DNA of 64,000 nt from Gnetum montanum. Taxonomy: Eukaryota > Plantae > Gnetophyta. The stretch is taken from contig MNCI01002198.1 of NCBI GenBank assembly GCA_015680685.1, forward strand, positions 124,001 to 188,000, written 5' to 3'. The notes under the pieces are model-generated. The model was given only the letters and a program-made list of their open reading frames with translations. It did not search any database and had not been told where the DNA came from. The translations under genes were made by a program, and so were the position numbers. Of the stretch, positions 15,089 to 50,670 are shown in pieces (positions within the stretch are counted from its first letter, which is position 1; every line of letters begins with the position of its first letter).

Positions 15089-15892
15089 TGATGAGACACG
15101 ATATCGCATGCACTGGATATCGCGTATGCGATATCACGGTTGTCGCGATATCGCGTCGTCCCCTGCGATATTGTGTACGCGATATCGCGGTCCGTCGTCA
15201 AATCTATAAATAAGAGGCACTCCCCTCATTTCTCATCCTAGGCTAGCAGTAGCAAAGCTCTGGCAGTTTAGTCACTCCAGAGATAGAATATTTTCCATGT
15301 GCCCGCAGTAGGAGTCCCCAAGTGAACGGATCTTTATTTGAGCAGCTTTGTACCTGAACGCAAGTTGTGTACGGTAATAAAGACGAGCTTTGTGGATAAA
15401 CCTTGCAGTGCATGGAATAGGTTTATTATCTGTTATTTCTTACATGTCATTTATTACATACATTAGCACGGCATGAGTACGACTTGATTACGAGCATTGA
15501 CGAATGTGTACGGCTAANNNNNNNNNNNNNNNNNNNNNNNNNNNNNNNNNNNNNNNNNNNNNNNNNNNNNNNNNNNNNGGTGTGTACGGTAAGTGGGAAC
15601 GGATGCTGATGCTAGTTAATTTAGACTTAGGACATTAGTTAGAGTTAGTTAGTTTCTCAACCCTTCACCCTTTAGCATAGGAGAAGAACCGTAAAAGACC
15701 AAAAAAATCATATACCTTGGACTTACTTAACCATACATCGTGACAACCACAAGTAAGTCTGGGAAGACAACGAATGATTAACCCCAAGTGTTCCATGGGG
15801 CATTTAGGCATTTAGTCTATGGAGTTTGACTGGATCGCACGTGCTATGCTCATTTCATATGGTTGAGTGTAGGGGTACCTCGCCACGCATCA
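15089..15892 (+). repeat. 5' LTR (contains an N gap)
   Basis: Matches 20991-21748. TATAAATA at 15205-15212. Confidence 0.9.
15099..15187. promoter_or_regulatory. Six CGATATCG palindromes directly upstream of the LTR TATA box
   Basis: Exact or one-mismatch copies at 15099, 15115, 15129, 15146, 15166 and 15180. Confidence 0.7.
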
Positions 15893-15893
15893 T

Positions 15894-15911
15894 TGGCGCC
15901 GTTGCTGGGGA
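15894..15911 (+). promoter_or_regulatory. Primer binding site, tRNA-Asp type (Athila)
   Basis: tggcgccgttgctgggga begins 1 nt after the LTR terminal CA. Confidence 0.9.
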
Positions 15912-16138
15912 CTAAGTGTTTGTGCACCAAATAGAACATAACGGATATCACTCACATCGTTGTGAGCCTTAACGAACCTTCAGGTTAATCAAGAAAAAAA
16001 TTTATATAACAGTGAAATAGCACACCAATCAAATTGCCTTCTTCTCATAAGAGCAACTCACCGCCTAAGGACCACACATGAGACATTCAGCAAGATAAAA
16101 AACATAACCAAAAACAGCCAAATCCTAAACAATATAAG

Positions 16139-18900: not shown

Positions 18901-20990
18901 CCATCCTTCAATCTAAGATCATCAATTGGGAGAAGTTGGGCACTTTTACGAAATTCAAAAAGACGCTCATTATTTCGGATCTCTCTCTTACAACTCAGTC
19001 ATGGGGGAGATGGCCACCTATGCTAATCATATGGGGCTCTCAGTTCTTTTAAGTTTTTGTTTTACAACGTTTTTGTTTTACACATTTTTGTTTTACAAAT
19101 TTCTTCAACTTTTCTACTTTTTGTTTTACAAATTTCTTTAACTTTTTTCGTTTTTGTTTTACATCATCGTTATACTTTTTCAATTTTTGTGTGTGTGTTA
19201 TCCACCCTGTAAATTTGTCCCATAATAAGTGTTCTTCATGATGGTATGAACTATTTTCATATTGATTGCTAATGTTTGGTTTTTACCTTTAAGTCACAAT
19301 GTTGATACTAAGGTATGTTTCTTTTGATATGGCAGGCAATGAGACCACTTCATCCATCCATCCACCAATTTCTATGGTTTCTCTCGGCTTGAAAATGTAT
19401 AGTCCCTTTCTAATAAGAACTTTAACGAAGCGGTGACTGGGGATTTCTCAAACTAAGGAAGGACTCATGGATTGAAAAGGGTGTGACTTCAAAGGAACTT
19501 GATGCTTTTGTGTTGGTCATTCTCTTGGGTGCTTAAATGTTTCTTCTTGAGTGTTCTTGCCGTTCCGATGTTACCCAATTATCAGAAGCTGAGACAATAA
19601 AAAATAAGTAGTCTTTGCATGGTGTGGTTCTCACGCATAAAAACACAAAACACAAAAAAAAAAAAAAAACCAAGTGAGAATTCAAAGCACACCCCTTAGA
19701 TGAATAAACTTGGGCTACAAGCACTGGTTATGGAACCAAAAGTGTTCCCTCTAACTAAGACCCTTCTCGCTTCCCATTCTCTCTTTCATTTTTGTTAGAA
19801 TGGAGGGGGCTCTTGGAGTGTGCATTCTTGTTATCCAAGTGGATGGTTTAACCGAATGCGTTGATGTGAAGTCACTGGATGTGGTTGGTTTGAGGCCGGA
19901 GTTGGAATGAGATTTACCAAGTCACATTAATCCTCAAACATACAAGGGGCTGTACACCACCTTGTTCTTGGGATTCCATTCCATTTCTCTTCTCTCCATC
20001 CTTCTCTCCATTGTTCACCTCATTTCCGGTTGTATCACTAGTGTATATATTTTGGTTGATGCATTGTTTTCTTTTTGGTAAATTCTTGTGGTTAAGACTT
20101 TAACTCTTGTTCCAAATGACATTCCCAGGGCCTACAGACTCTTAGAATGTGGGTTTGTCAGGGCATTAAGGGCATGAGCCTACTTTGGGGAGGACCCACT
20201 GACATTCCTATTTGGAGCATTAGTTAAATTCTTTCCCTTAGCCTTTTGCAATTAATTTTATTTTTGTTCATTTCCATCTTGAGATCCACTTCATCGATGC
20301 CATAGTTGTCCCTTTTTATCTATCTTTCTTACTCTTTTTCTTTCTGCATTCTAACGCTACTAGAGGTTTGCGATTAGTCATGGGGGTACGGGGCCTGATT
20401 TTTTCGATTTTCTCCTAGCCTCGAAATTTTTGATTTTCTTCCTAACCCCTACACCTTCGGTAGTCATCAGTCACATATTCCCAGATCCATATCAGCCATA
20501 CCACAACCTAGCCAATGAGTTTACATTGAAGCAAGGTATCAATTACATGATGATTCAATTACCCTTACTAATATATGATTGTGTTGTATGTGCAAATGGC
20601 GGACATGGAAACAACGGATTGGATCTAGAGCAAACACTTGGAGTGGAGCTGTGCTAGATGCAGCGATGCAAGGAGCAAGATCGATGACATGCTTACGGAA
20701 GGACAACGAAGGCACAATCTTGGCATTGGTAGCAGCAACATTTCTTTCTCTCTCTCTCTTTTTCTCAGCTGCCAACAAAGGCCTGATGTCATTATAATAA
20801 GGTGTTCACCCTTGTTGTCATGAACACCAGTTTTTTCAGATCTTGTAATAATGATCCGTTCACATGTCATCCCATTAGTTCCATCCCCCTCAATAATTCC
20901 ATACCTACCTGATNNNNNNNNNNNNNNNNNNNNNNNNNNNNNNNNNNNNNNNNNNNNNNNNNNNNNNNNNNNNNNNNNNNNNNNNNNNNN

Positions 20991-21748
20991 AGTAGGAGTC
21001 CCCAAGTGAACGGATCTTTATTCGAGCAGCTTTGTACCTGAACGCAAGTTGTGTACGACAATAAAGATGAGCTTTGTGGATAAACCTTGCAATGCATGGA
21101 ATAGGTTTATTATCTGTTATTTCTTACATGTCATTTATTACATACATTAGCACGGCATGAGTACGACTTGGTTACGAGCATTGACGAATGTGTACGGCTA
21201 ACCAAGGAATTGGCTACTCATCACGATTAGATTCTCTCACCCTTGTCTCCTAGAACGCGGGATGAGTACGGATTGATTACGAGCATCTATGGATGTGTAC
21301 GACTAGTCAAGGAATTGGCTGCTCATCACGCTTAGGCTAGTTAGGTGCCTCAGTACGACCACTTCGAGCATGTGCGTTACGTGTGGTGATCCCAGTAACG
21401 ATTAGCGTTTGGTAGCCCCAATTGCATAGTTCAGGGTGTGTACGGTAAGTGGGAACGGATGCTGACGCTAGTTAATTTAGACTTAGGACATTAGTTAGAG
21501 TTAGTTAGTTTCTCAACCCTCCACCCTTTAGCATAGGAGAAAAATCATAAAAGACCAAAAAAATCATATACCTCGGACTTACTTAACCATACATCGTGAC
21601 AACAACAAGTAAGTCTGGGAAGACAACGAATGATTAAGCCCAAGTGTTCCATGGGGTGTTTAGGCATTTAGTCTGCGGAGTTTGACCGGATCACGCGTGC
21701 TACGCTCGTTTTGTATGGTTGAGTGTAAGGGTACCTCGCCACTCATCA
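20991..21748 (+). repeat. 3' LTR (5' part lost in N gap), with an internal duplication of about 100 bp
   Basis: Near-identical to 15307-15892. The gagtacg..ttacgagcat..caaggaattggct..ctcatcacg unit appears at about 21159 and 21264. Confidence 0.9.
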
Positions 21749-30900: not shown

Positions 30901-31632
30901 GAATTGAAATTTTATTACTAGTGGATATTATGTTTTATTGTAGCTATGTTGGTTTGTAAAAAGTTCAATATCAACTTGCATTTTCTCCAAGCTAGAGATG
31001 GAAAAATAATAAATTCAATTCGAGGTTTACTTAATAGTATGATATTCAATGTTCTAGTCTTTGTGCACTACATTTATGCTATAGTAGTAAATCCATTATC
31101 CATTGCTAAATAAATTCCTTATTACATAATTCAAAATTTTCCTTCTACTGTGAATAGTTATTGTCCATCTTTGCACTAGGCATGTACGTTGAGAACAATG
31201 TAGACCTTGTTGGAGATGCTAACATTATTGAGATTTGGGAACTACTGGTATAGATTTGTACAGTCGTTTTGTACTTTTTGTAATTCATTTACATTATGTT
31301 ATTTGTAATTTTGATATTATGCCTGTTATTGTATTCTATTTCATGTTCTCTTTTATGCATCATATTATTATTGTATGTGTATTGATGTTCCTTGTAGTAA
31401 GGAACTTCTTGCATGTCCTAGCACAAGAGAGGATGTACTAATGGTCAATCTTCAACAACTACAGATTCAATAGCATAGAGATGTGCTTAGGAGAAGGAGC
31501 AAGAACAATCTCATAAGGAGCACATGGAGTATTTGGAGTGTGAGTGTTAGGAGGTGAAGTTTCCTATAGTGCCATTGAGGGCACCTAGGAACTTTAAGCC
31601 CCTTATGGAACTAGTGAATTCACTAGTTTTAT

Positions 31633-33727
31633 TGAAACACCATAAAATTTCAGGACCTTGATGCCTTAGCAGAGTCTTGAAATTTAGGCAAAGAGTTCCA
31701 CAAGTGTAGCATCATGATGGACTGTTCAAACAATGTAGGCATTGAGGGTAGACTGCATAGTCCGGCAAGTTTTCTATTGCCCAGGTTGACAGGCCTGCTG
31801 GACTCTCCAGCCTACCCAACTAGACAATTGACCCGGTTGACAGCCTACCCAGGGACCATGTTAGGAGTTGTCAAAAGTGTTTAGGATGAGCTAAATAGTT
31901 TAGCAAGTTTTCTAACATAGAAATCTACTACGTTGCGCAGCGTAGCAAGCCTTGAGGAGAATAATTAGATGTCAAAGATGAAAATTTATATAAAGCCAGT
32001 CTTCCAAAGCATTTGCCCTATTTCATCCCTAAAGCGTGAGCAATATGGTGTAACAGAATATGGTGAATTTTGTGAAGAATTATCTCCATTTGTGTGCTAT
32101 GCTAGGCAGCGTAGCACAACGTAGCAGGGATATACTTCAACAACACTCCTACTCGGGTAGCTTAGATAGAGTAAAAGCACTTGCCCCTACTTCAACCGTC
32201 AAACAAGCTTGCTTTGCTAACACACCAAGACATGGCAAATCTCCCATGAAAAAATGTTTGCAAAAATTAGTCAGGGTTCGGCCAACATTGGATGCTACGC
32301 CATGCTACGCTATGCAACGTAGCACAATGTAGCAAGGATAGAACGCACAAAGGCCCCTTTGCCAAGTGACTCCAGTAAGAGAATAGCACTTGGCAATGCT
32401 TTGGCCTCCAAAACTGCCTGTTCCACTTAGCCCTCATGCCTCAAGAAAAGTTTCTTGATAAAACATTGCAAATTAAACAAGGATGCATGTCACATTGGCT
32501 AGTACGCTGTTCTACATTGCATAGCGTAGCAAGGATGCAAAACAACAAAATGCCCCAAGGATGAACTTAGCAAGTCTGAAGGTTTTCTAGCATGGAAGAT
32601 AAAGTATCAATTGTTTGCCTAACCAAGCCTTAGATAGATGCCCTCAGCTTCTAGGTAAGACTCCTTTCAAGATCGGCAGCTATGCTATGCTACGCTACAT
32701 ATCGTAGCATGCAATTACGCTACGCCAACACGATGGACAACATAAGTAATGTAACACTTACATGGAGGCATCAAGACGTTTTCAGTTAGCTCTAAAACTT
32801 ATTGGAAATGATCATTCTCACCCTGGCATCTCTTTGGTGGACAAAATCAGCAAGTTTGCTTCATTTTGCATACCCCTAGTCAATCCCCAAAATTGTCCCT
32901 AGGCTTGACCTTGCTCAGCAAAAGTAGGGAAGACATAGTCTTGGAGCATAGACTTCATTTTGCTTTCATTGTTGGTATGCTTTTTGGATTTTGGCACATG
33001 CATTTTCAGTAATATCGTCACAATGTAACAGGGTTCACATCTAGCATCACACACCTACATAGCATAGCCATGCTTGCACCTTGCGGGACCCAGGACACAT
33101 GGCATCCAAACGACGTTTTTCTCCTGCTCTTAGCCCTATGAATACCCTGGCGAACAATGTTCAAAGGGTTGGCTTTTGGAGAGCATAGTTGGCATTTTTA
33201 GCATTCTGGTTAGCTTTGAGCATTCTAGTTAACTTTAGACATCCTTTTGTGGGTCTAGCATTTTGACACTTTGGCAAGTAGATTGGCAAGCAGAAGAATC
33301 TTGAGTAGCGAGCTATTGGCTATAGTTCAGGGACCTATGACCACACTGCTTTGTTGTAAGTTGTGCCATTCCAGTGTTGCATATTTAGTTGTACGCTTTG
33401 CAACAAAACAAAGATTAGATCTTCCATCTTAGGGTAGTGCATTTTCTCACCCAAGTCTCTTTTATTCTTTGTTTACTATCATTGCATTTTGCACTACTTT
33501 TATTATCTTGCATTTGTCAATCATCGCTTCACGTGCATGCATCGCTTCTAAAACAAATGTTTACGAAAAGTTAAGTTACATCGATTAAGTGCTTGTCTAA
33601 TCAACCAGATCATTAAGGGCACACCATTTTCATTTTTCTCTAGCATGACCCTCGCATGGATCCGGGGTTAAACTATATGCCCGACAACCTCTCGGTGTTC
33701 CAACCACCGATGTTTTTGGTCGCTGCA
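31633..33727 (+). repeat. Tat 5' LTR
   Basis: TGAAACACC...GCTGCA, colinear with 46740-48853 (roughly 85-90 percent identical by eye, mostly transitions). Confidence 0.9.
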
Positions 33728-33732
33728 GTTTT

Positions 33733-33746
33733 TGGTGCTAGAAGGA
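33733..33746 (+). promoter_or_regulatory. Primer binding site, Ogre/Retand type
   Basis: tggtgctagaagga follows the LTR end; compare the TGGCGCTAGAAGGA PBS of Tat elements. Confidence 0.7.
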
Positions 33747-33749
33747 CAC

Positions 33750-36506
33750 CATTCATAGGAGCAGCACCAATAGCGTCTCCCATGGGCCAGGTCGTTGCCT
33801 CTACACTGCAACCCCCATAGGCACATATGATAGCTACTCAAGTAGCCCCACAGCCATCTACAATGTCACCGAGTCTAGATCAAGCTTTTCAACTAATCCA
33901 AACCCTCACTAAGAAAATTAAACACCTCAAAGCTGCCAGTTCTGACATGGTGCAGGTCATGGATTTTTACCATGATGATCCCATCAGCCCAGTTGTCCCC
34001 ATGCACACGTTGCCCCCTGGGATGCCACTCCCCTAATTCACAAAATACAATGGGGAGGGTGATCCCAACGCACATTTAGTAACATTCAGATCTAAATCTT
34101 TATTGTTGCAACAATGGTTGCACACTATCAAATGCATCTTTGCCATGTCTTTGATGGGCAAAGCTCTAGACTGGTATTGCGCACTTCCACATGCCTCCAT
34201 CTCAACTCTGGAGGAGCTACTGAGTTAGTTCTTGATCCATTTCAAGTATAACTTGAAACCGGAGGTCATGCTAGATCAGTTGATGAGCGTCAAGCAAGAC
34301 CCACTGGAATCTGTGCAATGATTCATACAGTGGTGGAGTGCCACCTTGAATGAGCTCCACGAGCCTATCGCAGAGGCCCACTTGTTGGCCATATTCAAGG
34401 GGGCAATAAATGATTTCATCAAATCAAAGCTATACTACCTAGCCTCGTGCTCCCTTAACCAAGATTTTGCTTAGACTAACAGCATTAAGGATGCAGCCAA
34501 GGCTAGCAAAGATCCAGTCTATATTACATACAAGAATGCATAGCTCAAAAAAGACAAAGAGAAGGGCAAGGCTACAACAACCACGGTGGCCGCTATGGCT
34601 AACGAAACTAAACCCAACAATAGCAATAATAAAAAAGCGGTCGCAACAACAACATCTGGCTCAAGCAACACCGGTCATCCCTCAACACTAGCACCCGAGG
34701 TATCAACCCAACCTGAAGCCAACTTCAGGTGCAAGGATTCCTGTAAGTACATTCTACCCATTAAGCCTTCAGAACTCTTGAAGAAACTATTGGGGGTTGG
34801 ATATATTCAGCACACGTGGATGTAGGAGAAGGTGAGTCAACGTCATAAGCAGTATTGCGAACTTCTTAGGAACCCCTCCTTGGCCACACCCAATGAGCCT
34901 CAAGTTCCTATGAATTTTAGGCTGGAACGGTTCTATGATTACCATCAACTATGCAGTCATGACACGGACTACTGCCTAGTATTGAAAGACGACATTCAAT
35001 GCATGATTAATCAGGGCAAGCTTGTCCAGGATGAAAGTAGTCTTGTTTGCCCTGAAAACTAATTTATGTACATTTACAAGGATCCCCTCAATGCCAACAA
35101 TGTAGGGTACATCATCAACACGATTGGTATTGACAGTAACCCAAAATAACCACAACAACCATTCATGGTACATGTGCCTCAACGTAGCGTGGCAACACCA
35201 ATAATAGCAAAAAAGATTCCACAACAACCATTCGTCTTCAAGGTTCCCCCTCAGACATCTGCCCTTGCGCCTTTTGTGCTCAAAGCCACACCACCTCCCG
35301 CACCAACACCATAAGCACTGTTCATCATTAAGGTGCCAAAACATTCAAGTGCCACCATCACACATAGCCAACCAACTAAAATAGCCCCGTAGCCCCCGTG
35401 TTCAAAAAAATGGGAAGAGCATTTGGCGGACAAGATGGCTAAGGAACGCACCACCTTAGGTCCTTCCAAGCCTACCCCCTTTTCCTCAATGCCTACAATC
35501 CCCTCATTGTCAACGAGTGATAATGATGCACAGAAGCAATCGTCAATGTCCCGCTTGAGAAAGGAAAACCTTCAACCTAAAGCTCCCCCTCCTCGGGAGA
35601 TCTGTCTCCTAGGATGAATGGAGGAGAAGAAGGGTAACAGGCAAGATGGTGGGCAGGATTTGTTCAACGCCCTTACGCAAGTCAAGCAGGCTTTGAAACA
35701 AAAAAACACAACTTTGTGCTTGTATGAATTGGTGATGACTTCTACTGCACATCATGAGGCCATGGTTTGCATGTTAATGTCCATACCGGTCAACGAAAAC
35801 ATGCCGGCAGAGGAGAAAGTGATTCAAGCTATTATGCTTCCCTCTACAGCTGAGGAACCACGGCCATCTCAGTTAACATTTGCGATGAGTCCATTAAGGA
35901 TGACCCTGAAAAAGGTCAGGTGACAACAACATCCATGTTCATCATAATTCGGGTTGGTCAGTGTAAGATCCAAAGGGTACATGTTGATGACAGGGATGTT
36001 GCTAATGTCATCCCCTTTTCCATAGTGGAAAAATTAGGTTTGGTTGATCAAATCAAGCCCACGGTGACATCTTACCTAAAATCGTTTAACGGGGTATGTG
36101 TGTAGGTAAAAGGAACTGTATGTATCAACTTTGTAGTAGGGGACTAGTTCCCCACAAGCGTAGTATTCATAGTGGTAGAAGAAATGCCTAGGTTCAACCT
36201 GATCTTGGGGAGATCATGGTTGGCCCAATTGAGGGCTGTTTCCTCTCCAATACACCAGGAGATTCACTTGCCCTATGAGGGAGGGAAAGTGATAATTCAT
36301 GGCAATGCAGTGGCTCCCCAAGCCATAAACAATGTAGGAATGGAGCAAGGATCAGAGATTGAAATCTCTGAAGATCAAACCCCTGTTCAAACTGAAGTGC
36401 TTGAACAAGTTGAAACTAGTTCAAATGAAGTAGCAACATGAGCTGAGTTGCCCTTTCAGGAAGTAGATGATGACATAAAAGAGTATCATAACAAAGCCTC
36501 TCGGCC
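33750..36506 (+). pseudogene. gag: Tat gag and aspartic protease remnant
   Basis: Motifs FTKYNGEGDPNAHL, SLMGKALDWY, the Tat-type knuckle YDYHQLCSHDTDYCLVLKDDIQCMINQGKL, protease RVHVDDRDVANVIP and FNLILGRSWL. Confidence 0.88.
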
Positions 36507-36720
36507 GTACGCATCACCGAGCCCATGATGGGTTAGGAAGAAGCTACGAGAATGATCATTGCTTGCGTTATCATAACTGCATCACTGCTTTCACCATGAT
36601 TACTGCTTGCATCAACCATACATCCACTGGTCACATTGCTTTGCTTTGTATTCATTGTTTACGCTAGCATCTTCCTCATTATTTACATTGTCCACATTAT
36701 GTTCATTGTTTGCATTACAC

Positions 36721-36903
36721 CATGGCCTGCTAAGGCCTAAAACTGGCAGATTTTTTTTATCACCCTACGATGGCCCGAAATGGCCTAAAACTAGTGATGG
36801 CTCGAAATGACCTAAAACTAGTGATGGCCCAAAACAACCTAAAACTAGCGATAGCCCGAAATGGCCTAAAACTAGCAATGGCTCGAAATGGCCTAAAACT
36901 AAG
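36721..36903 (+). repeat. Hairpin array A: 27 bp unit GATGGCCCGAAATGGCCTAAAACTAG(C/T) x5 plus a lead copy
   Basis: Direct tandem repeat visible in the sequence. Confidence 0.9.
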
Positions 36904-37074
36904 ATGAGAAGCTCCCAAGGAGCTTAAAAGGACAAAGAATAAAAAATAAATATAACACACTGGCCAAAATGAAATAAATCTCTTCACATTATATTCTTCA
37001 TTCAATATCAACCAATTATGTTTACAAAATTTTTTGTAAATTCAAAGACAAGAATAAAATTCCTCGTCGCTATG

Positions 37075-40000
37075 CTATGAGTCTTCGCCCACACCACCAT
37101 TCCCTGCTTCACTGGGTTTGGCATTTTCATTTGAATATTGCACAACAAAGAAAATAAAACAATCAATTAAAGCTACAACAAAGGCTATTATAAAATAAAC
37201 TATGACACCACAAAAGGTAACTAACCCGAGATGGCCCCGTGTCTGTTTCGGGGGGTATCTGATCCATTTCGACCGTGAGACATTACAAGATCTCCTCCTC
37301 GATGATGTTGGCCCAATTCTTGTCTCCCAAATCAACACTTGTTGCAACCTTCTCCTTTTTTATAGTTGTCCATCTAGGTGGTCCTGGAGAGAAGGTGGCA
37401 ATGGTGGTCTCACCCACAGGTAGGGTCACCTCCCTTTCGAGAGATCCACTAACTATCACCTATTGCATGAACCTGTCATAAGCCCTGGAAGCGCTAATAA
37501 TGTCAAGGAATAACTCATGGGTATGCAACTTGACCGAAGCATCCTAATATTATTTATGGTAGGCAGCACATTCCATTTTATACATATGTTTGTGGTTCTT
37601 ATGTGCCTGCCCCCACTCGTAAACCTTCGTGCTATAATCCTTCTAGTCTTGGTTCTTCTGGGCTAGAAGGTGCATTTGCATGTGTTGTTTGATTATTTCG
37701 CATGTGGCTTCATTATTGCATCATAAAGCTGTCCAATATCTTATGTAGTTGATGACAGTTGTACGCCAACTACCATCGTGAGTGTCCTGGGCCAACAGGA
37801 ATTCATTCCTGGATTGGAGATCCCCCACCTCAGCGGTTAGGTTGACCTTCTCCTTCTCAAGTTTTGCTCTTATTTCTAGAGGTCTTCGTTCACACGCCTA
37901 CACTCCCACAGAGAGCATGCCAAGTACAACACACATTTACTTTCTTCATCATATATGTGACAAGGTACTTCGGTCACCTCCGGTGGAAATTCAGAAACGA
38001 CATCGACCTCAACTGCCTACTTCGGATCCCACTTGAGGCAGGAGGCTGCCAACTCTACATGGAAGGGCATTAGTCACAGTGACATAGTGAAATTGTAACA
38101 ATGTAGAAAGCCTAGCATAGCAACTTTAACTTACCAATCTCTTGATCGATCTACCTCAGACAATCGATCATGTCATTGACCACCCCCTCCATAAAAGTGA
38201 ATTTGTTGGGGGTCTCAGTCCATGGTCAGAGATGAATCAAAGAAGGGCCAAGAGTATCAATAGAGGTGTTTGCTACATAATAAAATGTGTTAGCACAATG
38301 GACAGAACTACAAGAAAGCTGATGAACAACATAAATGACAGTGTAAAGCTGCTACCCAGAAATCCTCAGGGGTGATAGCGTGGGGGGGGGGGGGGGGGGG
38401 TCACCCATTGGCACACTGTCAAACAAGCGGTCAAAGTCACCAGCATCAAAATGGAGCCTCTCTCTTTCTAGCTGATCCAACAGCGTAGCAGTGTCCTCAA
38501 CACTCATATGCCCCTTTGATATTGAACCACACTTGACAAAAGGGTCATGAGCAGGGGCCTCTTCTTAACTAGCAGGGGCCTCTTCCTCATCGGCAGGGGC
38601 CTCTTCGTCTGTGGTCGGGGCCTCTTCATCTTCGCTCATCACCCTCTTCCTCCCNTGTCTGTGGTCGGGGCCTCTTCATCTTCGCTCATCACCCTCTTCC
38701 TCCCCTTCTTCCTCTTCTTCCTTTACTAATAAAACATAATTACAGTAAACAAGATACATCAACTTGGAATAGATGCTACATTGTGCAATGCTATCTAGTG
38801 TAGCACAACATTAACCAAATAGTCAAACACACTTACCAATTAGGGGCTGCAGTCTACGAATTTTGAGTCACAGCTTCTTCCCCCTCTCTTCATTTGTATG
38901 GGGAGGCTCTTTAGCAGGACGAGATTTCTTATGTTGCAACTTAGTCTTCACTATTTTTGCAATAAAGCATGCTCCCCTTGACACACTGCCTGTGTTAATG
39001 GGGGGTGCCTCTCCCATGATGTACTGGGCACGAAAGGGATGTGCCGCTCGATCCCTTGTCGTTATTGAAAGCGATTCTCCAATAGCCTTTAGGGGATCTT
39101 TGGATCATGTGGTACGAAAGACCTGGCAAATCCATGGCTTTGATATCTGGCTACGATCTTGTTGTACCTAGATGTAATTTTCAGGGACTACTAGGAACTC
39201 CGCAAAGTGCCACAAGCAGGCTATGAAAAAGGTGTAGTGTACATTGACATGGGACTCAAGCTTCTCGCAAAGCTTGACCATTTTAATGCACAAGCCTTCA
39301 GAAAGGTACTGGGCTCAGTTGTAATGGGTCTCTTCTTCCATAACCTCCTTCATTATCCAAGCCTACTCCACCCAAAGGATATGCCCTTGGGAGCGTAGCT
39401 TGGGGAAGGCACGGGCACGGAAGATAGGGTAAATCCTTTTGGCTACCGCTAGCTTGACCTTGTAGATATAAATTCCCTTTTGAACCTTACTTGTACCTAG
39501 CCACTCCTCAATGTTCCCCTAATGGTTTGCATCCTTCTTAGATTTTTCTCCTACAAGGAGACCATTAGAAGGGACATCGAAAAGATTCGCAAAAAGTTGG
39601 TCATCAATTTCGAATACCACCCGCACACTGTGAACACCTGTACAGAAGTTGGTTAGGGAAAGCACTTCAGCAGCCGGGACATTTAGATTTATAGCCAAAA
39701 ATAAGTGCATGAGCCTAGCCTCCTAAAGGTTGTGGACAATGGTGGCTAGGGCTCCATTACAGAGCCAACGCTAAGTCTCATCCACCTCTCTATACTTGAA
39801 GAAGAGGTTGGTTTCGTTATGCCCAAAGGTGATCACAATGACCTCTTGGGATTCTGTTGCCACTGTAACAGTTTGGAAAAAAAGAGAGAAAAAGTTAGTA
39901 AAAAAAAATCAGAAAACCATATTGTCACTCGAACACATAACAATGAATCCATGGTTTAGCATACTAGGTTTAAATGATGTAGAAAATGATGGGAGTTCAA

Positions 40001-41850
40001 CTAGCATGTCTTCAATGGTAAGCGGTGTAAGGGATGCACACTCCCCATCCAACCAACTAGCCTCCTTACCCTTTCTATAAAATTTTGAATATCGGGTTGG
40101 GTAGGTTTTAAACTCAAGTCCAAGTTGTCCTATTATGTTGGCACGCATGTTCCTGATAGAGGAGAACTCCTACAAGGTTGTCTGTGCCAACACCAAGGCA
40201 TCTGTGTCACTGTGAAGATCATTCCCATTAATATAAAACCTAGTAGTACACAAAAATGTAGTTAACATCTTTGTCTAGCATAACATAGATTATACAACAC
40301 GTTAAGATACCTCCACAAAACTCACTCGCTGACATAGTAAATGATTCTAGGTGGGTTCTGAAAACAAGTGCCCATGTGACGGGCAACGTATAACGTGTTA
40401 TATAAGTGATAGCACTTGTACTCAGGCATGTCCCAAATCCAACTTAAGTACCTCAAGCCTCTTGGACACTAGTTGGAACCTTTTGTACATTCTCCTTTGA
40501 TCGCCCCGTCAGCCATGAACTTCAGAATACCCTGGTTTGCATCAGGCAATAGTGTTTCTGTAATTGCGGCCGTTGTCTCGGCTGATAAGTGTGACCATAC
40601 GATCACATTAAAATGGTGGAGGAGGAACTGTAAGAAGTCCCGTGCACCCTCCTAGAACCAAACTACTTGCTACCCCACACATGCATGGTGAGGAGGGACG
40701 TTGGCCACAGGTTCACTGAGGTAGCACAAGACTCCTACAAGTTCAAGGATGAACAAGACAGGTTTAAACATGACCCTGCATGACAAAGCATCAAACGTTA
40801 GCACTGTGTTCAAGTGAGGTTTACACGTAGTGTAGCATGACCACCTGTTTACAAGTAGCATAGCGTAACCCTCTATTTACATGTAGCATAGAATGATCTT
40901 CGAACTACGAATCCCTTTTTTAGCATGAACCAAGGAGTCCCTTAATGAATGAAGGTAAACATTGCATGAAGCATACTAAAAAGAGTTGGGAGTAGCATAG
41001 CATAACGGTTAAGTCCAATGTAATGTATAACAAGCAAAGCACTGTAGCCGGCGTCACGACATAGCAAACTTGGCAGAATAGCAAATTTAACAATGTAGCA
41101 GCACTGCAAATTTAACAGCGTAGCAACATGATAGACTGCCAACATATCAGCCTAAGGGCCTCACAGCATAAGCAAAGTAGCGTACCAACAAAAACTTTAC
41201 AGTCTAACCATGCAGATGGGAGAGAATTCACAGTGCCCCCGCTGTTGCAACCCTACCTTGCCGCATGAAATAGCTCGCGCTACACTACACTAAACATGCG
41301 TCACGCTGTCATAAATTTTTTTGTAAATAACTAAACCTCTCCAAGGGCGGTACGTTACACCAAGCATATGCTATGCCACACAAAACCACCCAAACTGCTA
41401 TAACAAGGTAGTCGCCATTCTTAACAATGGTGGCTAGGGCGATACTGCATGTAGCCGTAATGTAGCATCCATACGGCCGCTGTGGCCAACTAGCGACAAC
41501 GACGGCGTAGCGGCTAAAACGCCAACTAAAACACTAGCAATAAATGCAGACATCACCATAATAACAGCAACAACGATCTAATTCATTTCATCACCTAAAG
41601 AAAATAAGGATAGCGTAGTCACTTACCGAGTTGATGGAGCCTCTTATCACACCTCAACGCTCGCCTTGGACAGGTGTCCCAGAGTGTCCTTCACCCCATC
41701 TACCTTGGCAAGTCCTCGATGCTTGCGTTCGCCTTTGGGTGCCATTATATTGCTCATGAATTATCTCTGCCAACTACTATGCTACGCCTGTTGCACTCTC
41801 TCTACTCAATCGTGCTATGCTCTGGATGTGAGCTTTGACAATGAAAATGA
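37075..41850 (-). pseudogene. Antisense spliced accessory gene: FCP1/NIF pseudo-phosphatase domain, plant transposon domain, EEAP acidic repeat, coiled coil
   Basis: TATA 41875-41882 and ATG 40771. Introns 41626-40776, 40325-40240, 39964-39863, 38836-38726, 38134-38055 and 37225-37138 (last acceptor CAA). The frame is preserved across the first three coding introns, with only TAG/TGA decay stops. Confidence 0.8.
40140..40771 (-). pseudogene. FCP1/SCP (NIF, HAD-superfamily) phosphatase-like domain with degenerate catalytic motifs
   Basis: MFKPVLFILELVGVLCY..VG*QVVWF*EGARDFLQFLLHHFNVIVWSHLS..LRYLSWIW..YNTLYVARHMGTCFQNPPRIIYYVSE/FYINGNDLHSDTDALVL matches the NIF order LVLDxxGxL, RPGxxEFL, FxVxVWS, KDLSxxW, NTLLVDD..NP. 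Confidence 0.78.
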
Positions 41851-41874
41851 CAAGTTTACCAGGGGTTAAATCCC

Positions 41875-41882
41875 TATTTATA
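41875..41882 (-). promoter_or_regulatory. TATA box of the antisense gene
   Basis: ctataaataggg on the minus strand, about 250 nt upstream of a canonical cg|GTAAGT donor at 41626. Confidence 0.65.
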
Positions 41883-42060
41883 GTTAATGTGGGAAAACAC
41901 TTGCCATTTTCATGTTTCAATTAATGCGGGACATCCCCTATAGCGTAGCACTATTATGTCGTAGTCCCACTATAGCGTAGCAATTATTTGTAGCATAACA
42001 GGCGGGCCTACTGGAAATTTTGCCCCATCTTGTCACTTTATCTTTACAAAATCTACCTCA

Positions 42061-42380
42061 TCATGGTCTGCAAATACCTTAAACTAGTAATCTTAACTTT
42101 TAATTCTACCTAGTAATGGTCTGTAAAGACCTTAAACTAGCAATTTTAACTTGCAATTCAACCTGGCAATGGTCTGCTAAGACCTTAAACTGACGATTCT
42201 GATTTATGTGGGATACTAACCTACAATGTAGCCTAATGATGGTTTGCTACGACCTTAAACTGGAAAAGTTAATGCCCCTTACATTTTCAAACCCATTAAC
42301 GGTCTTCTAAGACCTTAAACTAGCAATTCTGATGTACAGGTTGTGCATGATTATAGTCCACTAAGACCTTAAACTGGAAA
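42061..42380 (+). repeat. Hairpin array B: ATGGTCTGCTAAGACCTTAAACTRG x6 with variable spacers
   Basis: Copies at about 42063, 42116, 42169, 42239, 42299 and 42353. Confidence 0.88.
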
Positions 42381-42504
42381 CTTGCAAACTTTGCATAGTA
42401 CTTGACAATTATTTCATGTTGCATTGTTGCTTTACAAACATTCATTACATGTTGTTGCTACAGACATGTATCACTTGACTTAGTCTTTTTTCTTATTGTG
42501 TCAG

Positions 42505-45500
42505 GTTTAACAAAAATGGCCATGCATGGTGATCTTCATTTGCTTTTAACCTTGACAGGTCCTCATGGCAGGCTCACAAGACACCTAAACTTAGAATCAA
42601 TAGACTGGGAATCATATACTAACAACACCGTAGTGTCCCTGGAAACATTCCTAGATTGGCCCGAACATCTGGTCCAAGCCTTAGACTTAGAGGCCAGGGA
42701 TGTGATTGAGGACGCTCTCAATGAAACACCCGTAACTACATTCAAGGGGCAAATAAAGACATTAAAAGTTATCTCCCTCCTAGATCCACATATGCAAAAA
42801 GGCATATTTAGGATTCTCCAAGACAATGTGAAAGTGTTTGCATGGTCCTATGAAGACATACCAGGCTTAGACCTGCGGCTCATACAACATAACATTATCT
42901 TAGACCCACGTGTCAAGCCAATCAAGCAAAAGGCTCGAAAAATCAAATCAGAAATCGCACTAGCTGTACATGATGAAATCACCAAGCTGTATCAAGCTGG
43001 TTTCATTCGTGCGGTCGATTACTTGGAGTGGGTGTCGAACATCATTGTAGTTTCTAAGAAAATGAGAGGTATACGAATTCGTATAGACTTTCGAGATCTA
43101 AACAAAGAAATGATTAAAGATGATTTCCCATTACCAAGTATTGATCAACTTATAGACACTATGGCTAGTCATGCCTTATTGTCCTTTATGGATGGGTTCT
43201 CAGGTTACAACCAGATTCGCATCAACCCAGAGCATCAGTTAACAACTACTTTCATGACCCCTTGGGGAACCTTTTGTTACACCATGATGCCTTTTGGACT
43301 CAAAAACACCAAAGCAACCTATCAATGAGTCATGACATACATTTTTAGCGACTACCTCTTGCAGAGATGAAATTATTACGTGGATGACATAGTAGTCAAG
43401 TCTAAGGAAGCTATTAATCATCCCAATGATCTAAATGTAGTCCTCAAACGTTGTTACAGGCATGACTTGCATCTCAATCCAAGGAAATGTGTTTTCAGAG
43501 TTAAAATCAGACGCATGCGAGGGTTTGTAGTATCGGAGGCAGGGATATGAGTGGACCCTGATAAGGTAAGGGCCATCATCAACTTAGCACTGCCTATGAA
43601 CCTTAAAGAGCTATGTGGGTTGCAAGGTAGAGTACAGTTTATTTGGAGGTTTATTACGAGGTTGACCGACAAGTTACACCACATGCAACACTTGCTAAAG
43701 AAGGGGGTCAGCTTCGAGTGGACAGAACAATGTCAACAAGCCTTCAATAACCTAAAGAAAGAGCTTTTGCACCTCCCAATTATTTACCCACCATAGAGGG
43801 ATAAGACTTTCTACATCTACCTTGCCACCTCGGACACATCTATTGCAACATTATTATGTCAGAAGAAAGATGATGGCTCTGAAGTCCTGGTTTATTACTT
43901 GAGCCATGTGCTAATAGCTTATGAGGCAAAGTATAACGAAGTAGAAAGAAATTGTCTCGCTCTAGTGTTTGTGCTAAAAAAGTGGAGACATTACCTGTTT
44001 CGTAGCAAAGTTAACATCATATGCAAGAGCAACATACTTCAGGCTAATCATAACGAACTTGTACGAGAGCAGTAGAATAGCCCAATGGAAGGCTATAATA
44101 GCTGAATTCGGCTTACATTATGTAGCCCAATCATCAACAAAGGGCCAAGCAATAGTTACACAACTTACAACTTCACCTATTGACAATCAGGCAATAATAG
44201 AGCCTAAATTCCCTGATGAACACATCAATAGCCTAAGCCTTGTACCATCTGACTTCAAAGAAACTCTACATTTTGATTATGCTTTGGCCACATGAAGAGG
44301 AAGCACCGCCATAGTTATTACTTTTCCTTCTAGGGATATTCAACCTTTTGCTTACCGTTTTATGTTCCTTTGTATGAACAACATAGCTAAGTACGAAGGA
44401 CTCCTCAGGGGTCTCTTAGTAGCTTGAGAACTAAAGATTCAACATTTGGTAGTTTGAGGCAATTCCCAACTCATCGTCAATTAGATTACCAAAGTCTATG
44501 CTTGTAAAGCTTCACACTTACAACCTTATTACGACTTGGCCAAGAGTTTGCTGAAATAGTTTGCAACGATAGACATCCAACATGTGCCTCACAACAAGAA
44601 CACTGTAGCAAATGCACTAGCCACGTTAGCATTGAATGTGCCACCGAATCTATTTGCAACTTTATCCACTTTGATGATAGAATGCAGAAATCCTATTACT
44701 CAAGTGGTACACATCGCATCTATAAGAACAACTAATATTCAAGAGTGGTATGCTAATGTCAAAGCTTACCTTGAACACGGCAAACCCTCACACAGCTTAA
44801 CATCCACTCAAAAGGATGCAATCCGAAAGCGAGCATGGTAGTATGTCCTCGTAGGAGATAACACTTTATGCAAATGCTCCTTTGATGGGATATTACTAAC
44901 CTGCATTGGTGGGAAACAAGCACAGAAAATTGTTAATGAAGTCCATGAAGGACTGTGTGGAGGACACATAGCCCCTAGGGCTATGGCAGTAAAAATTAGA
45001 CGCCTAGGGTACTGTTGGCCTTACATTGAATGAGATTACCTTGCCAAAGTCAGGACGTGTGATGTATGTCAACACCATGCAAATCTCATACACGTGTCAC
45101 CTACTAAATTACATCCTACGCAGATCACATGGTCATTCCAATGATGGGGACTAAACATCATAGGACCCATCATGCCTAAGTCTTCCACAGGACACAACTT
45201 CATCATCACTGCCACCGAGTATTTTACAAGTGGGTGGAGGCTATTCCCCTAAGAAAAACTACATCTCAACAGGTTTGCCACTTTATCTTAGACAACATAG
45301 TAACAAGGTTTGGTCTTCCCATGACTATTGTGACAGACAACGGGCCACAATTTAGTAGTGCAGAAACCAAAATATTTTGTGACAACCTTGACATCAAGCA
45401 CTCATTTTCATCGTCGTACTACCCACAGGCAAATGGTCAGGTAGAGGCAACAAAAAAGGCCATGATCAACTTGCTCAAAAAGATGCTTAGTAGTAGCAAG

Positions 45501-46023
45501 AGGCGATGGCATGAGCAAATCCTCTACGTATTGTGGGCTTACTGCATGACGTGCAGAATGGCTATAGGTAAAACTCCTTACAAACTTGTTTGTGGANGTA
45601 CGTATTGTGGGCTTACTGCATGACGTGCAGAATGGCTATAGGTAAAACTCCTTACAAACTTGTTTGTGGATCTAAAGTGGTGTTACCTCTTGAATTACAA
45701 GTACTATCACTTTGGATGATCCTTTCAAGCATCATGAACGAGGCCTAGAACAATGAGTCAAGGGTCATTAACCTTGACTCCATAGAGGAGGAGCGTGCCC
45801 AAACACTTGGTTGCATCGAATGGTACCAGGACAAGCCAATCAAAAAGGGGGACCTAGTTCTCAAGTTTGTTTGTGAACATGTAAACAAGTTCTCAACAAA
45901 CTAGGAAGGCCCATTCGTAGTCACAAAAGCCTATGAGAATGGGGCCTTCAAGCTAGCTGATATGGATGGCAATGAATTTACAAATCCCATGAACCACTTA
46001 TACCTCAAGCCATAGTACATCTG
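42505..46023 (+). pseudogene. pol: Tat pol: RT, RNase H, additional (archaeal-type) RNase H, integrase
   Basis: Motifs VFAWSYEDIPGLD, IDFRDLNK, SFMDGFSGYNQI, MPFGLKN, YVDDIVVKS; aRH NNIAKYEGLL, GNSQLIVN, NTVANALA; INT HEGLCGGH, TDNGPQF, YYPQANGQVEA, EGPF. Confidence 0.95.
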
Positions 46024-46051
46024 ATACAAAGCAAGGTAAGTGCCATCATCC

Positions 46052-46443
46052 ACTACGATGTAAAACTGGCAAAGATTATTTTCTATGACATAAAATTGGC
46101 AAAGATAGTACGCTATGACTAGAAACTGGCACAAAATGTCTACTACGATGTAAAACTAGCACAAAATGTTTGCTATGACATTAAACTGGCACAACACATC
46201 TTTGGGCCATGACATAAAACTGGCATCCACAGTATGGTCTGCTACGACCTTAAATTGGTCATCCACCATCTGCTACGATGAGAAACTAGCACAACGGTAT
46301 GTTAGGACCTTAAACTGGCACATTGATCCACTACGACCTTAAACTGGCCCATCCACTGTCTGCAATGATGTTAAAATAGCACAACAATCTGCTAGGACCT
46401 TAAACTAGCACATTACGGTCTTCTAGGACCTTAAACTAGCACA
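46052..46443 (+). repeat. Hairpin array C in the 3' UTR: about 13 copies of a ~30 bp unit CTACGACCTTAAACTGGCA plus variable spacer
   Basis: Repeated (c/g)ta(c/t/g)ga..(t/a)aaact(g/a)gca units with the same core as arrays A and B. Confidence 0.88.
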
Positions 46444-46739
46444 TCTTTGAGGAGAGGTCAAAAAGGCCAACAAAGAAGGATGCTCATGTGTGTTGACTCC
46501 CTCACAAGCACTTCGATGAGGGATCATGCTATGTCATATCTTTTCCTTTCTCGGACCTATCCCCTCAAGTCCATCCTTTCCCCCTTTCCCTACATGACTA
46601 TCTCAATACTCGCAAGCGTAGTAAAGCGACATCTAAGCGACCACTGGAGAGCAATGTTAGCATTTTTTTTCATGGTGTTTTGTATTCTTTGTCGATATCT
46701 CTTGGGTAGGTCCTCTAGACATCAACAAAGAGGAGCCAT

Positions 46740-48853
46740 TGAAACACCATAAAATTTCAGGGCCCTGATGCCTCAGTAGAGTCTTGACATTCGGGCAAAG
46801 AGTTCCACAAGTGTAGCATCATGATGGATTGTTCGGACAACATAGGCATTGAGGGTAGACTGCACAGTCCAACAAGTTTTCTATTGCCTGGGTTGACAGG
46901 CCTGCTAGACTCTCCAGCCTACCCAACTAGACAATTGACTTGGCTGATAGTCTACCCAGGGACCATGTTAGAAGTTGTCAAAAGTGTTCAAGATGAGCTA
47001 AACAATTTGACAAGTTTTTTAACAGAGAAATCTGCTATGCTATGCTATGCTGTGTAGAGTAGCAAGCCTTGAGGAGACCAATCAGACATCCAAGATGTAA
47101 ATTGATAATAAGCTAGTCTTCCAGAGCATCTACCCTGTTTCATCCCTAAAGCATGAGCGATATGGCGCAACAAAATGTGGTGAATTTTGTCAAGCATTAT
47201 CTCAATCTGAGTGCTATGTTGTGCTACACTATGCAACATAATACAACGTAGCGGGAATATACTTCGACAACACTCCTACTCGGGTAGCTTTGATAGAGTA
47301 AAAGAACTTGCCCCTACTTCAACCGTTAAACAAGCTTGCTTTGCTGACACACCAAGACATGAAAAACATCCTATGACAAAATGTTTGCAAAAATGAGTCA
47401 GGATTCGGCCAACACTGGGTGCTATGCTGTGCTACACTATGCAGTGTAGCAAGGATAGAATGCACAAAGGCCCTTCTACCAAGTGACTCCAGTAAGAGAA
47501 TCACACTTGGCAATGCTTCGACCTCTAAAACTACCTGTCTGACTTAGCCCTCACTCCTCAAGCAAAGGTTCCTAATAAAACATTACAGATTAAACAAGGA
47601 TGCATGTCACATTGGCTACTATGCTGTGCTATGCTGCATAGCATAGCACAGTGTAGCAAGGATGCAAAACAACAGAATGCCCCAAGGATGAACTCAGTAG
47701 GTCCGAAGGCTTTCTAGCATGAAAGACAAAGTTGTAGTTGCTTGCCTAACCATGCCTTAGACAGATGCTCTCGGCTTCTAGGTAAGACTCTTTTCAAGGT
47801 TGGTAGCTACACTATGCTATGCTATGTAGCGTAGCATAACATAGCGTGCAGTTACTTACACTACCCCAACACAATGGATAACGTAACTAATGTAACACTT
47901 GGAGGCATCAAGATGTTTTCAGTTAGCTCGAAAACTTGTTGGAAATGATCATTCTCACCTTGGCATCTCTTTGGCGGACAAAATCAGCAAGTTTACTTCA
48001 TTTTGCATACCCTTGGTCAATCCCCAAAATTGTTGCTACGCTTGACCCTGCTCAACAAAAGTAGGGAAGATGTAGTCTTGGAGCATAGGCTCCATTTTTC
48101 TTTCATTGTTGGTATGCTTTCTGGATTTTGGCACATGTAGTTTCAGTAATATGGTCACAGCGTAACAGGGTTCACATCCAACATCACACACCTACATAGC
48201 ATAGCCATGCTTGCACCTTGTGGGACCCAGGACATGTGGCATCTAGACTACATTTTTCTCCTGCTCCTGGCCCTATAAATACCCCGGCGAACAATGTTCA
48301 AAGGGTTGGCTTTTTGGGTTGAATTTTCAAGAGCATAGTTGGCATTTTTAGCATTCTGGTTGGCTTTGAGCATTTTGGTTAACTCCAGACATCCTTTTGC
48401 AGGTCTAGCATTTGTGCACTTTGGCGAGCAGATTGGCAAGTAGAAGAATCCTGAGTAGCGAGCTATCGGCTATAGTTCAGGGACCTATGACCACATTTCT
48501 TTGTTGTAAGCTGTGCCATTCTAGTGTTGCATATTTAGTTGTACGCTTTTCAACAAAACAAAGATCAGATTTTCCATCTTGGGGTGGTGCATTTTCTCAC
48601 CCAAGTCTCTTTTATTCTTTGTTTACTATTGGCTTGCATTTGTTGATCATCGCTTCACCTGCATACATTGCTTCTAAAACAAACATTTATTAAAGGTTAA
48701 GTTATACCAATTAAGTCCCTGTTTGATCGACCAGACTGTTCAGGGCATCCCGTTTCTGTTTTTCTCAAGCACGGCCCTCTCACAAATCTGAGGTTAAACT
48801 GTACGCCTGGCAACCTCTCAGTGTTCTAGCCACTAACATTTTTGGTTGCTACA
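46740..48853 (+). repeat. Tat 3' LTR
   Basis: TGAAACACC...GCTACA, preceded by the PPT-like aacaaagaggagccat. TATAAATA at about 48274. Confidence 0.9.
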
Positions 48854-50670
48854 CTTCCTTCTTTCGTGATGTGTCTGTTTGGAATGCCCTTGCCCCCTTT
48901 CTCTACTATTTTGTCAGTGCTTTCTATTTCACCTACCATTGTCCTCATGGTCTTGCCCTCTGTGACTGTGCTCAGATCATGAAGGAGAGAAGGAAGAAGA
49001 TGATGAAAATGAAGAGGAAGGAGGACTAGCACCATGTCAGCACTTGCCACCTTCTCTTTGATGGTCGTGGCCTTAATCGTGGTTACAATCATAATGTCCA
49101 TCATTGTCATGTGTTCGTGTTCCTTTTTTGGACACTTTATGTCCATTGGTACTAGAACCTGGGTTATGAATAGTTGAGTGAAGATTTTGATACCCAAGTC
49201 CTTGACCAAAGTCAAAGAGAGGAACATTGTTTTGTGGAAAACCTCCCAAGACAAGTTCACCACTGTCATTTTTACTTAGGACATACGGGACATCCTAAGA
49301 CCACTTCCCCTTCACGAATTTGTAATGTCTCTCCTGTTGTAGATCCCTCTGGCATTGTGCCTTCATGGGTTGATAATCTCTCGAATCTTATTCATGCACA
49401 ATGTACTCTGAATATAAGTGCTACATACCAATTTGTGTGAGAGCATGAAGAAGCATGCCTAGGATTAAGTGATCAAGAGTTAACACCATGTTACCTTCTA
49501 AATCACGCCATCACAGCTGTTCATCCTAGTGGAGGATAAAGTTAAAGTCTGGTACATACTCATTAGGATGAGCGTATACCATGTGAAACTATTGGGGCAC
49601 TGGCGGATCATCTTGTGCATCCCACCTCTAATTGTTCATGGTATTGGACTTAGTCAGTGAAGCACTCTTATAAGAAGAAGGAGACATGATTGATTACTCA
49701 GTGTGTGGTACTCTTTTCTGGTGATTGTAGGATAGTTAACCTTAAGGGTTCGTTCCAATGATGGAAGGATTTCCTAAGTTCTAATCAACGCACAAACAAC
49801 AAAATCCCCAGCAACGGTGCCAATGATGAGCGGCAAGGTACCCCTACACCCAACCATATGAATATGAGCATTCATGTGTGATCCGGTCAAACTCCAAGGA
49901 TTAAGTGCTTATGCACCTACATAGAACAAAAATGAGTTATGTAGTCATTATCCTCCCAAGCTTACTTGTAAGGCATAATTGTATGGTTAAGTAAACTTGA
50001 GGCATATGATTTTTTTATGTTCTTTATATTTTCTATCTTGGTCTCCTGAGTGTGTTAAATGAAAATATTTAGTTAACTAATGGGTTTTTCTAACTCTAAT
50101 GTTAATCGAATCCTGACACCAGCATTTTTTCCCACTCTCTAGACACATCCTGAACCAATGTAACACTACTGGGATTACCAAACTCTAGTCATTACTGGGT
50201 TACCAAGTGTTCCACGTATGCTCAAAGTGGTCATGTTGAGTGTGCTAATTCGTTGATAATTAATAATTATATAGAAATAACATTGATTAACTAATGAGAG
50301 CATCAAATAATAGTAAATAACATTAAATGAAATAGTTAAGCTATTTTGAATGTTGCAAGGTTTATCACAAAGTTTGTCTTTATTTCTAGACACAAGGTGT
50401 GCTTAGGCACACAATGCTCAAATAAAGATCCATTTACTCTATGACTCCTACTGTGGGCACTCAAAAATAATTCTAACTCTAGAAGAGAAAAACTGCAAGA
50501 GTTCGACTAAGGGACTGAAAAATACTATCCAAAACCAAGTGCCCCTGTTTCTTATTTATAGACAACGAGAAAGGCTTCGACATCGCGTGTTCGATGTCGG
50601 GGATCCGATGTTGCTTGGCCGATCCGATATCACGTATCCAATATCGGGTCACTTATTTGGTGACTCATCA
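48854..50670 (-). mobile_element. 5' fragment of another Athila-family copy: LTR 49824-50670, Asp PBS 49805-49822, gag N-terminus from 49582
   Basis: TGATGAG termini. The PBS reads tggcaccgttgctgggga on the minus strand. MVYAHPNEYVPDFNFILH*DEQL is homologous to the ORF at 16139. Confidence 0.88.

Follow-up and report, generated by a model that had tools for sequence, protein, structure and literature searches.

Within a 64,000-nucleotide stretch of the Gnetum montanum genome (GenBank assembly GCA_015680685.1, contig MNCI01002198.1, positions 124,001 to 188,000 of the forward strand; hereafter the window, in whose coordinates all positions are given), a long terminal repeat (LTR) retrotransposon of about 17 kb (31631-48856, plus strand) holds on its opposite strand a broken reading frame that resembles the NIF/FCP1-homology domain. 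The element can reasonably be classed, from its sequence, as an Ogre-like Tat LTR retrotransposon, and the frame lies in a spacer of about 6 kb between its protease and its reverse transcriptase (RT). On balance we favour the view that the frame represents part of an accessory gene of the retrotransposon itself, dead in this copy, and that this gene is antisense, spliced and endowed with a NIF domain.

An antisense spliced frame with a NIF-like domain

The initial annotation of this region had read a single minus-strand frame from an ATG at 40771 across one 86-nt intron, and this reading was reproduced together with the strings that it quoted, namely VLFILELVGVLC, WF*EGARDFLQFLLHHFNVIVWS, LRYLSWIW and YNTLYVARHM..QNPP before the intron and FYINGND..DTDAL..L*EF after it. 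Exon A is interrupted by TAG at 40672-40670, 40654-40652 and 40471-40469, and exon B by a single TAG at 40172-40170 (Table 1). The beginning of exon A is more likely at 40775 than at the ATG, since the acceptor-like sequence TTTGTCATGCAG, with its AG at 40777-40776, directly precedes that position, while exon B probably ends at 40070, ahead of a well-formed second intron. The length of this intron is divisible by three, and the open frame carries on beyond it into 39862-39787 of the minus strand. Downstream of the NIF-like exons, the minus strand of 39522-39722 offers 67 further stop-free codons (..VRVVFEIDDQLFANLFDVPSNG..), which may be another exon of the antisense gene; a Pfam search with this stretch returned no match. 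The antisense intron immediately upstream of exon A contains a 28-nt tandem repeat in 2.8 copies (40819-40896).

Table 1 Positions of the antisense gene, its putative motifs and the parts of the host element in the window
Feature	Position	Strand	Remarks
Antisense exon A	40326-40775	-	NIF-like, from motif I through motif IV positions; three TAG stops
Motif I position	40730-40744	-	E-L-V-G-V (GAA CTT GTA GGA GTC) in place of D-x-D-x-T/V; placed by eye
60-residue stop-free piece	40472-40651	-	Sole part recognised by any tool (Pfam, ESM Atlas)
Motif III position	40451-40453	-	Arg (AGG) instead of the family's Lys; placed by eye
Motif IV position	40379-40384	-	Ala-Arg (GCC CGT) instead of the family's DD or DN; placed by eye
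Antisense intron 1	40240-40325	-	86 nt; GTGAGT donor, CTACTAG acceptor; phase 2, frame-keeping
Antisense exon B	40070-40239	-	NIF-like C-terminal part (FYINGND..DTDAL..); one TAG stop
Antisense intron 2	39863-40069	-	207 nt; GTAAGG donor, TACTAAC branch site, long pyrimidine tract, CAG
Spacer between protease and RT	36507-42504	+	About 6 kb, holds the antisense gene; intron-like bounds on the sense strand
5' LTR	31631-33730	+	blastn and MAFFT against 46738-48856
gag and protease region	33827-36441	+	Decayed, several open reading frames; strings recognised by eye
RT and RNase H	42402-44072	+	Pfam RVT_1 3.7e-07 and 3.9e-05; RT_RNaseH 4.2e-10
Integrase core	45234-45620	+	Pfam rve 6.2e-11
3' LTR	46738-48856	+	blastn and MAFFT against 31631-33730

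The stop-free pieces of the frame were searched one by one, and all scores given here refer to single pieces and never to the whole domain. The 60-residue piece from exon A matched the Pfam NIF profile (PF03031) with an E value of 0.0052 and 16.9 bits, the gathering score being 21.8, and its residues 2-39 aligned to positions 42-79 of the 160 in the profile, which is where this stretch would be expected to fall. The ESM Atlas, whose approach differs in kind from a profile search, returned NIF clusters as all 30 of the 30 nearest for the same piece (best 0.94, recognition 3314); the closest were generic NIF clusters, and none named TIM50 or another subfamily. The Pfam check that had been proposed alongside the initial annotation was run on pieces; it gave NIF for this one, at a score below gathering, and was blank for the others. 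A NIF/FCP1-like domain as annotated is supported for the 60-residue piece by both methods, while its motifs I, III and IV stand on placement by eye. The pieces that carry these three motifs found no match of their own in Pfam, NCBIfam, the PDB or the ESM Atlas.

Other searches with these pieces returned nothing further. NCBIfam was blank, sequence searches of the PDB with four pieces gave nothing relevant, and for the 60-residue piece a search for homologous proteins yielded zero candidates and a comparison with metagenome loci no relative. A phmmer match to P0121, a bacterial PEP-CTERM repeat protein, was set aside as spurious, its score being summed over four repeats. A Pfam search of 17 further stretches without stops on the minus strand of the spacer detected zero domains. 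AlphaFold2 modelled the 60-residue piece alone as a helical hairpin with a predicted local distance difference test score of 74.9, a model judged uninformative on the fold. Taken together, we hold it very probable that the sequence is truly derived from a NIF domain. Candidate donor subfamilies are SCP/CPL, TIM50-like and UBLCP1-like proteins, and a link to the RNA polymerase II (Pol II) C-terminal domain (CTD) is only one possibility; because these subfamilies are not distinguishable here, the 'CTD' label of the initial annotation is unproven.

Residues at the presumed catalytic positions

The placement of motifs I, III and IV was made by eye, guided by the order in which they occur and by their distances from the Pfam-anchored piece. 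On this placement the motif of the nucleophile Asp, DxDx(T/V), is absent from its aligned position, where the E of ELVGV stands 32 residues ahead of the Pfam-anchored piece as against about 34 in the profile, and no D-x-D string occurs among the 33 residues that precede the first stop. The Ser/Thr of motif II, which follows a hydrophobic strand, is present as NVIVWS inside the Pfam-aligned stretch. The Lys of motif III and the acidic pair of motif IV are both replaced (Table 1).

To arrive at GAA, GTA, AGG, GCC and CGT from the codons of D, D, K, D and D, a minimum of five transversions together with two transitions would be required within 15 bases. The LTRs of the element record about 1.3% transversions per site per LTR lineage and, because at least five are needed, the replacements would predate the insertion if the alignment is right. 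Decay after insertion was accordingly rejected as their source, there being too many transversions and transitions alone being insufficient, which agrees with the statement in the initial annotation that the changes go beyond C-to-T decay, again under the by-eye alignment. In a HAD phosphatase, the phospho-aspartyl intermediate cannot arise if the nucleophile Asp is lacking. Since this residue appears to be missing, the likely product is a binder rather than an enzyme, and the encoded protein was most likely a non-catalytic, ligand-binding fold.

State of the frame at insertion

The history of the frame, like that of the motifs, is drawn from one broken copy. Over 205 codons the exon frame contains 4 stops, compared with 11.4 in shuffled exon sequence (P(<=4) = 0.008). 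The two LTRs differ by 13.1% substitutions (Kimura two-parameter distance 0.148; 216 transitions to 54 transversions; 8 gap openings), and a neutral-decay model that runs at these per-lineage rates predicts 1.3-2.1 new stops since insertion. Because the stops are so much fewer than in shuffled sequence, and 1.3-2.1 of them are expected from decay, the frame of this copy is likely to have been open, or almost so, at the moment of insertion. All four stops are TAG, the type that arises by C-to-T decay at CAG or TGG, as had been suggested from the start. The LTR rates also predict about one indel over the length of the exons, so the absence of any frameshift is unremarkable. The main inference of the initial annotation, that the parent element had an open frame with an already non-canonical active site, is supported by both the stop counts and the transversions needed, provided that the alignment is right.

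The protease-RT spacer

That the gene is borne by a retrotransposon was confirmed by its setting, antisense between protease and RT and inside the LTR pair. The protease is over by 36441 and the RT open reading frame (ORF) begins at 42402. On the sense strand the spacer opens with a donor, GCC/GTACGC, at 36507 and closes with a strong acceptor, a pyrimidine tract followed by CAG/, at 42504 (the slash marks the joint), although reading the spacer as an intron is not proven, since the frame across the joint misfits in this copy.

No nested LTR or terminal inverted repeat pair was found in the spacer, and a nested foreign element was rejected on that ground. Hairpin-like arrays with a unit of 27-53 nt and the core GGYCTnnAAGRCCTTAAACT flank the spacer at both ends (36721-36901 and 42049-42390) and recur after the integrase (46052-46445), and the GC content of the spacer (0.43) and its CpG depletion (0.46-0.49) are like those of the remaining element. 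From the lack of a nested pair, the shared repeats and the matching composition, the spacer looks like a part of the element itself and not like something inserted later. At 38607-38704 and 45525-45670, stretches of 50 and 74 nt, respectively, are duplicated in tandem with perfect (100%) identity; each duplication spans one N (38655 and 45597), and both look like unmerged assembly overlaps rather than biology.

Discussion

We tentatively propose the following account of how such a gene might persist. An Ogre-like Tat element would harbour a spliced gene on the opposite strand of its 6-kb spacer, two exons of which would encode a NIF/FCP1-homology domain of the HAD fold. Because its introns are antisense, they would not be removable from the sense RNA of the element; they would escape splicing of that RNA and be copied at every retrotransposition. 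In the copy described here, a frame that was open at insertion would later have gained four TAG stops of the methyl-cytosine-decay type, and the positions of the nucleophile Asp, the second Asp, the Lys and the DD pair would already have been occupied by E, V, R and A-R. The product would have bound a ligand, the Pol II CTD or another, without dephosphorylating it. In a more ambitious version of this account, selection would keep an antisense gene of several exons in the gag-pol intron of an Ogre-like lineage. Its catalytically dead FCP1/SCP-type product would attach to the Pol II CTD in phosphorylated form, or to a silencing or RNA-processing factor that depends on CPL, and would thereby bias transcription, intron splicing or silencing in favour of the element. 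This version appears rather doubtful to us; the role of phospho-CTD reader or decoy in particular is purely inferential.

Several observations weigh against an accessory gene of the element that was intact when this copy inserted. Only one piece of 60 residues is recognised by any tool, and in Pfam at a score below gathering. The piece that holds the positions of motifs III and IV obtained no recognition in the ESM Atlas (best 0.81), and a phmmer search with the 60-residue piece against 1.84 billion representatives contained no true relative. Decay after insertion would produce four or more stops with a probability of only 0.05-0.15, so a stop may have been present in the frame from the beginning. 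Finally, the sense splice signals of the spacer fail to rejoin the gag-pol frame, being off by one, with a TGA at 36439.

The same blank database searches could be expected if a fragment of a host NIF gene, introns included, had entered this copy or a recent parent by recombination or repair and never served the element. The capture of gene fragments by retrotransposons is common in plants (PMC7264820), and the gene is broken in this copy. A one-off event of this kind nevertheless fits poorly with a frame that is far more open than chance, as an ORF intact at insertion would be, and with a spacer that shares its repeat motifs and composition with the element, and we judge it distinctly improbable. 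Mere chance likeness in non-coding spacer DNA could be argued from the sub-threshold Pfam score and from the blank phmmer, PDB and NCBIfam searches, but it would have to account for two independent methods (Pfam and the ESM Atlas) giving one and the same family, for the openness of the frame (P 0.008) and for two canonical introns that preserve it; we give it hardly any credence.

The donor of the domain might have been a naturally non-catalytic NIF subfamily or one unrelated to Pol II, such as TIM50-like or UBLCP1-like proteins, in which case the lack of the motifs would be inherited rather than an innovation of the element, and the idea of a CTD reader misplaced. This is unlikely in our estimation. 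Several strings of the antisense exons may resemble TIM50-type sequences. That a NIF fold can be non-catalytic is seen in the intermembrane-space domain of yeast Tim50, a peptide receptor that binds presequence peptides and has no perfect DxDx(T/V) (PMC8346121). Tim50 differs, however, in being a host-encoded mitochondrial membrane protein that no evidence links to the element gene, and no subfamily, TIM50 included, is named by a tool result, the nearest ESM Atlas clusters being generic NIF. With the Pol II CTD phosphatases FCP1, SCP1 and plant CPL, the antisense frame shares a weak profile match over the helix-strand-helix that follows the insertion hairpin and has the other motifs in the same order and spacing, whereas the aligned positions retain none of DxDx(T/V), the Lys and the DD pair, and the match stays below threshold. 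Conversely, the gene of the family might encode an active phosphatase, and the odd residues might stem from an error in aligning motifs I, III and IV by eye, or from a local rearrangement. The pieces that bear these motifs have no tool-supported alignment, which leaves some room for such an error, but their order and spacing agree with the Pfam-anchored piece and D-x-D is absent from the 33 residues ahead of the first stop, making this very unlikely in our view. We retain an accessory gene of the element's own, encoding a NIF fold that probably bound rather than dephosphorylated, as the preferred reading.

The arrangement can be compared with several known systems. Ogre elements (Neumann et al. 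2003/2019, PMC6317226), which belong to the Tat lineage of Ty3/gypsy, are comparable in the position of the spacer, in their large size, in their extra coding capacity and, as far as can be judged by eye, in an aRH-like stretch between RNase H and integrase. In Ogre, the region that separates gag-protease from RT-RNase H-integrase is removed as an intron from part of the transcripts, and it averages 274 bp (PMC6317226), in contrast to the 6 kb with an antisense spliced gene found here; furthermore, the extra ORF of Ogre runs in sense upstream of gag and often encodes a plant mobile domain, and no such ORF1 is present in this element. Retand, Grande and RIRE2 (PMC7264820, PMC11963269) likewise have extra ORFs on the strand opposite to gag-pol, which occur in every copy and are thought to be regulatory. 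Those, however, are plain ORFs between pol and the 3' LTR, mostly of the Transposase_28 type, whereas the present gene lies between protease and RT, bears introns and is NIF-like. A further comparison is with the AlkB (2-ODD) m6A demethylase ORF of giant orchid Gypsy elements (PMC9289625), in which a host enzyme domain that acts on RNA or the transcription machinery has been fixed in a lineage of large Gypsy elements; catalytic activity is retained there, while the catalytic residues are apparently replaced here.

The extra genes that reviews and surveys name for plant LTR retrotransposons include the plant mobile domain, Transposase_28, Athila ORF1, G-patch, AIR1, AlkB and the antisense ORFs after pol, and the text of the study that screened 121 angiosperm genomes (PMC9289625) does not mention NIF when it names extra domains. 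Our full-text literature searches gave no paper tying a NIF domain to LTR retrotransposons, in line with the remark in the initial annotation that this cargo was unfamiliar from Tat/Ogre elements. Extra genes of plant LTR retrotransposons are known, but few have a recognisable fold and fewer still a testable function. If our reading holds, an antisense, intron-bearing and non-catalytic NIF-fold protein would constitute a new class of cargo, and would show a route by which antisense introns can outlast retrotransposition. Binding of the phospho-CTD, or of another phospho-peptide, would then give a handle on how a giant element confronts host transcription or silencing. The value of this dead copy lies in its being one dated witness of a frame that was apparently open, with motifs already replaced, at the time of insertion.

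The host element and its surroundings

Between the LTRs, the order RT, RNase H and integrase is that of Ty3/gypsy. The region upstream of the spacer was assigned by eye, from a gag zinc-knuckle-like string and from protease-like strings (VDDRDVANVIP and LILGRSWL), and Pfam was blank for gag and protease. An aRH-like tail (NTVANALATLA-like) was likewise recognised by eye between RNase H and integrase, near 44590, and gave no match in Pfam. The Tat/Ogre label of the initial annotation is consistent with the RT, RNase H and integrase, with this tail and with the GT..AG-bounded spacer, but not with the lack of an Ogre-type ORF1 upstream of gag, for which there is no room because the first ORF of the gag region begins at 33827, about 100 nt past the LTR.

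The closest protein matches to the RT are only 40-62% identical, which implies that the family is absent from the protein collection searched. With the RT as query, viral contigs yielded nothing and metagenomes six short, distant loci without the upstream region. Elsewhere in the window, 15307-21734 is occupied by a second, younger LTR pair with 93-97% identity and a spacing of about 5.7-5.9 kb, which encloses ORFs at 16139-16825 and 18421-18837 and is accompanied by runs of N at 15518-15578 and 20914-20990.
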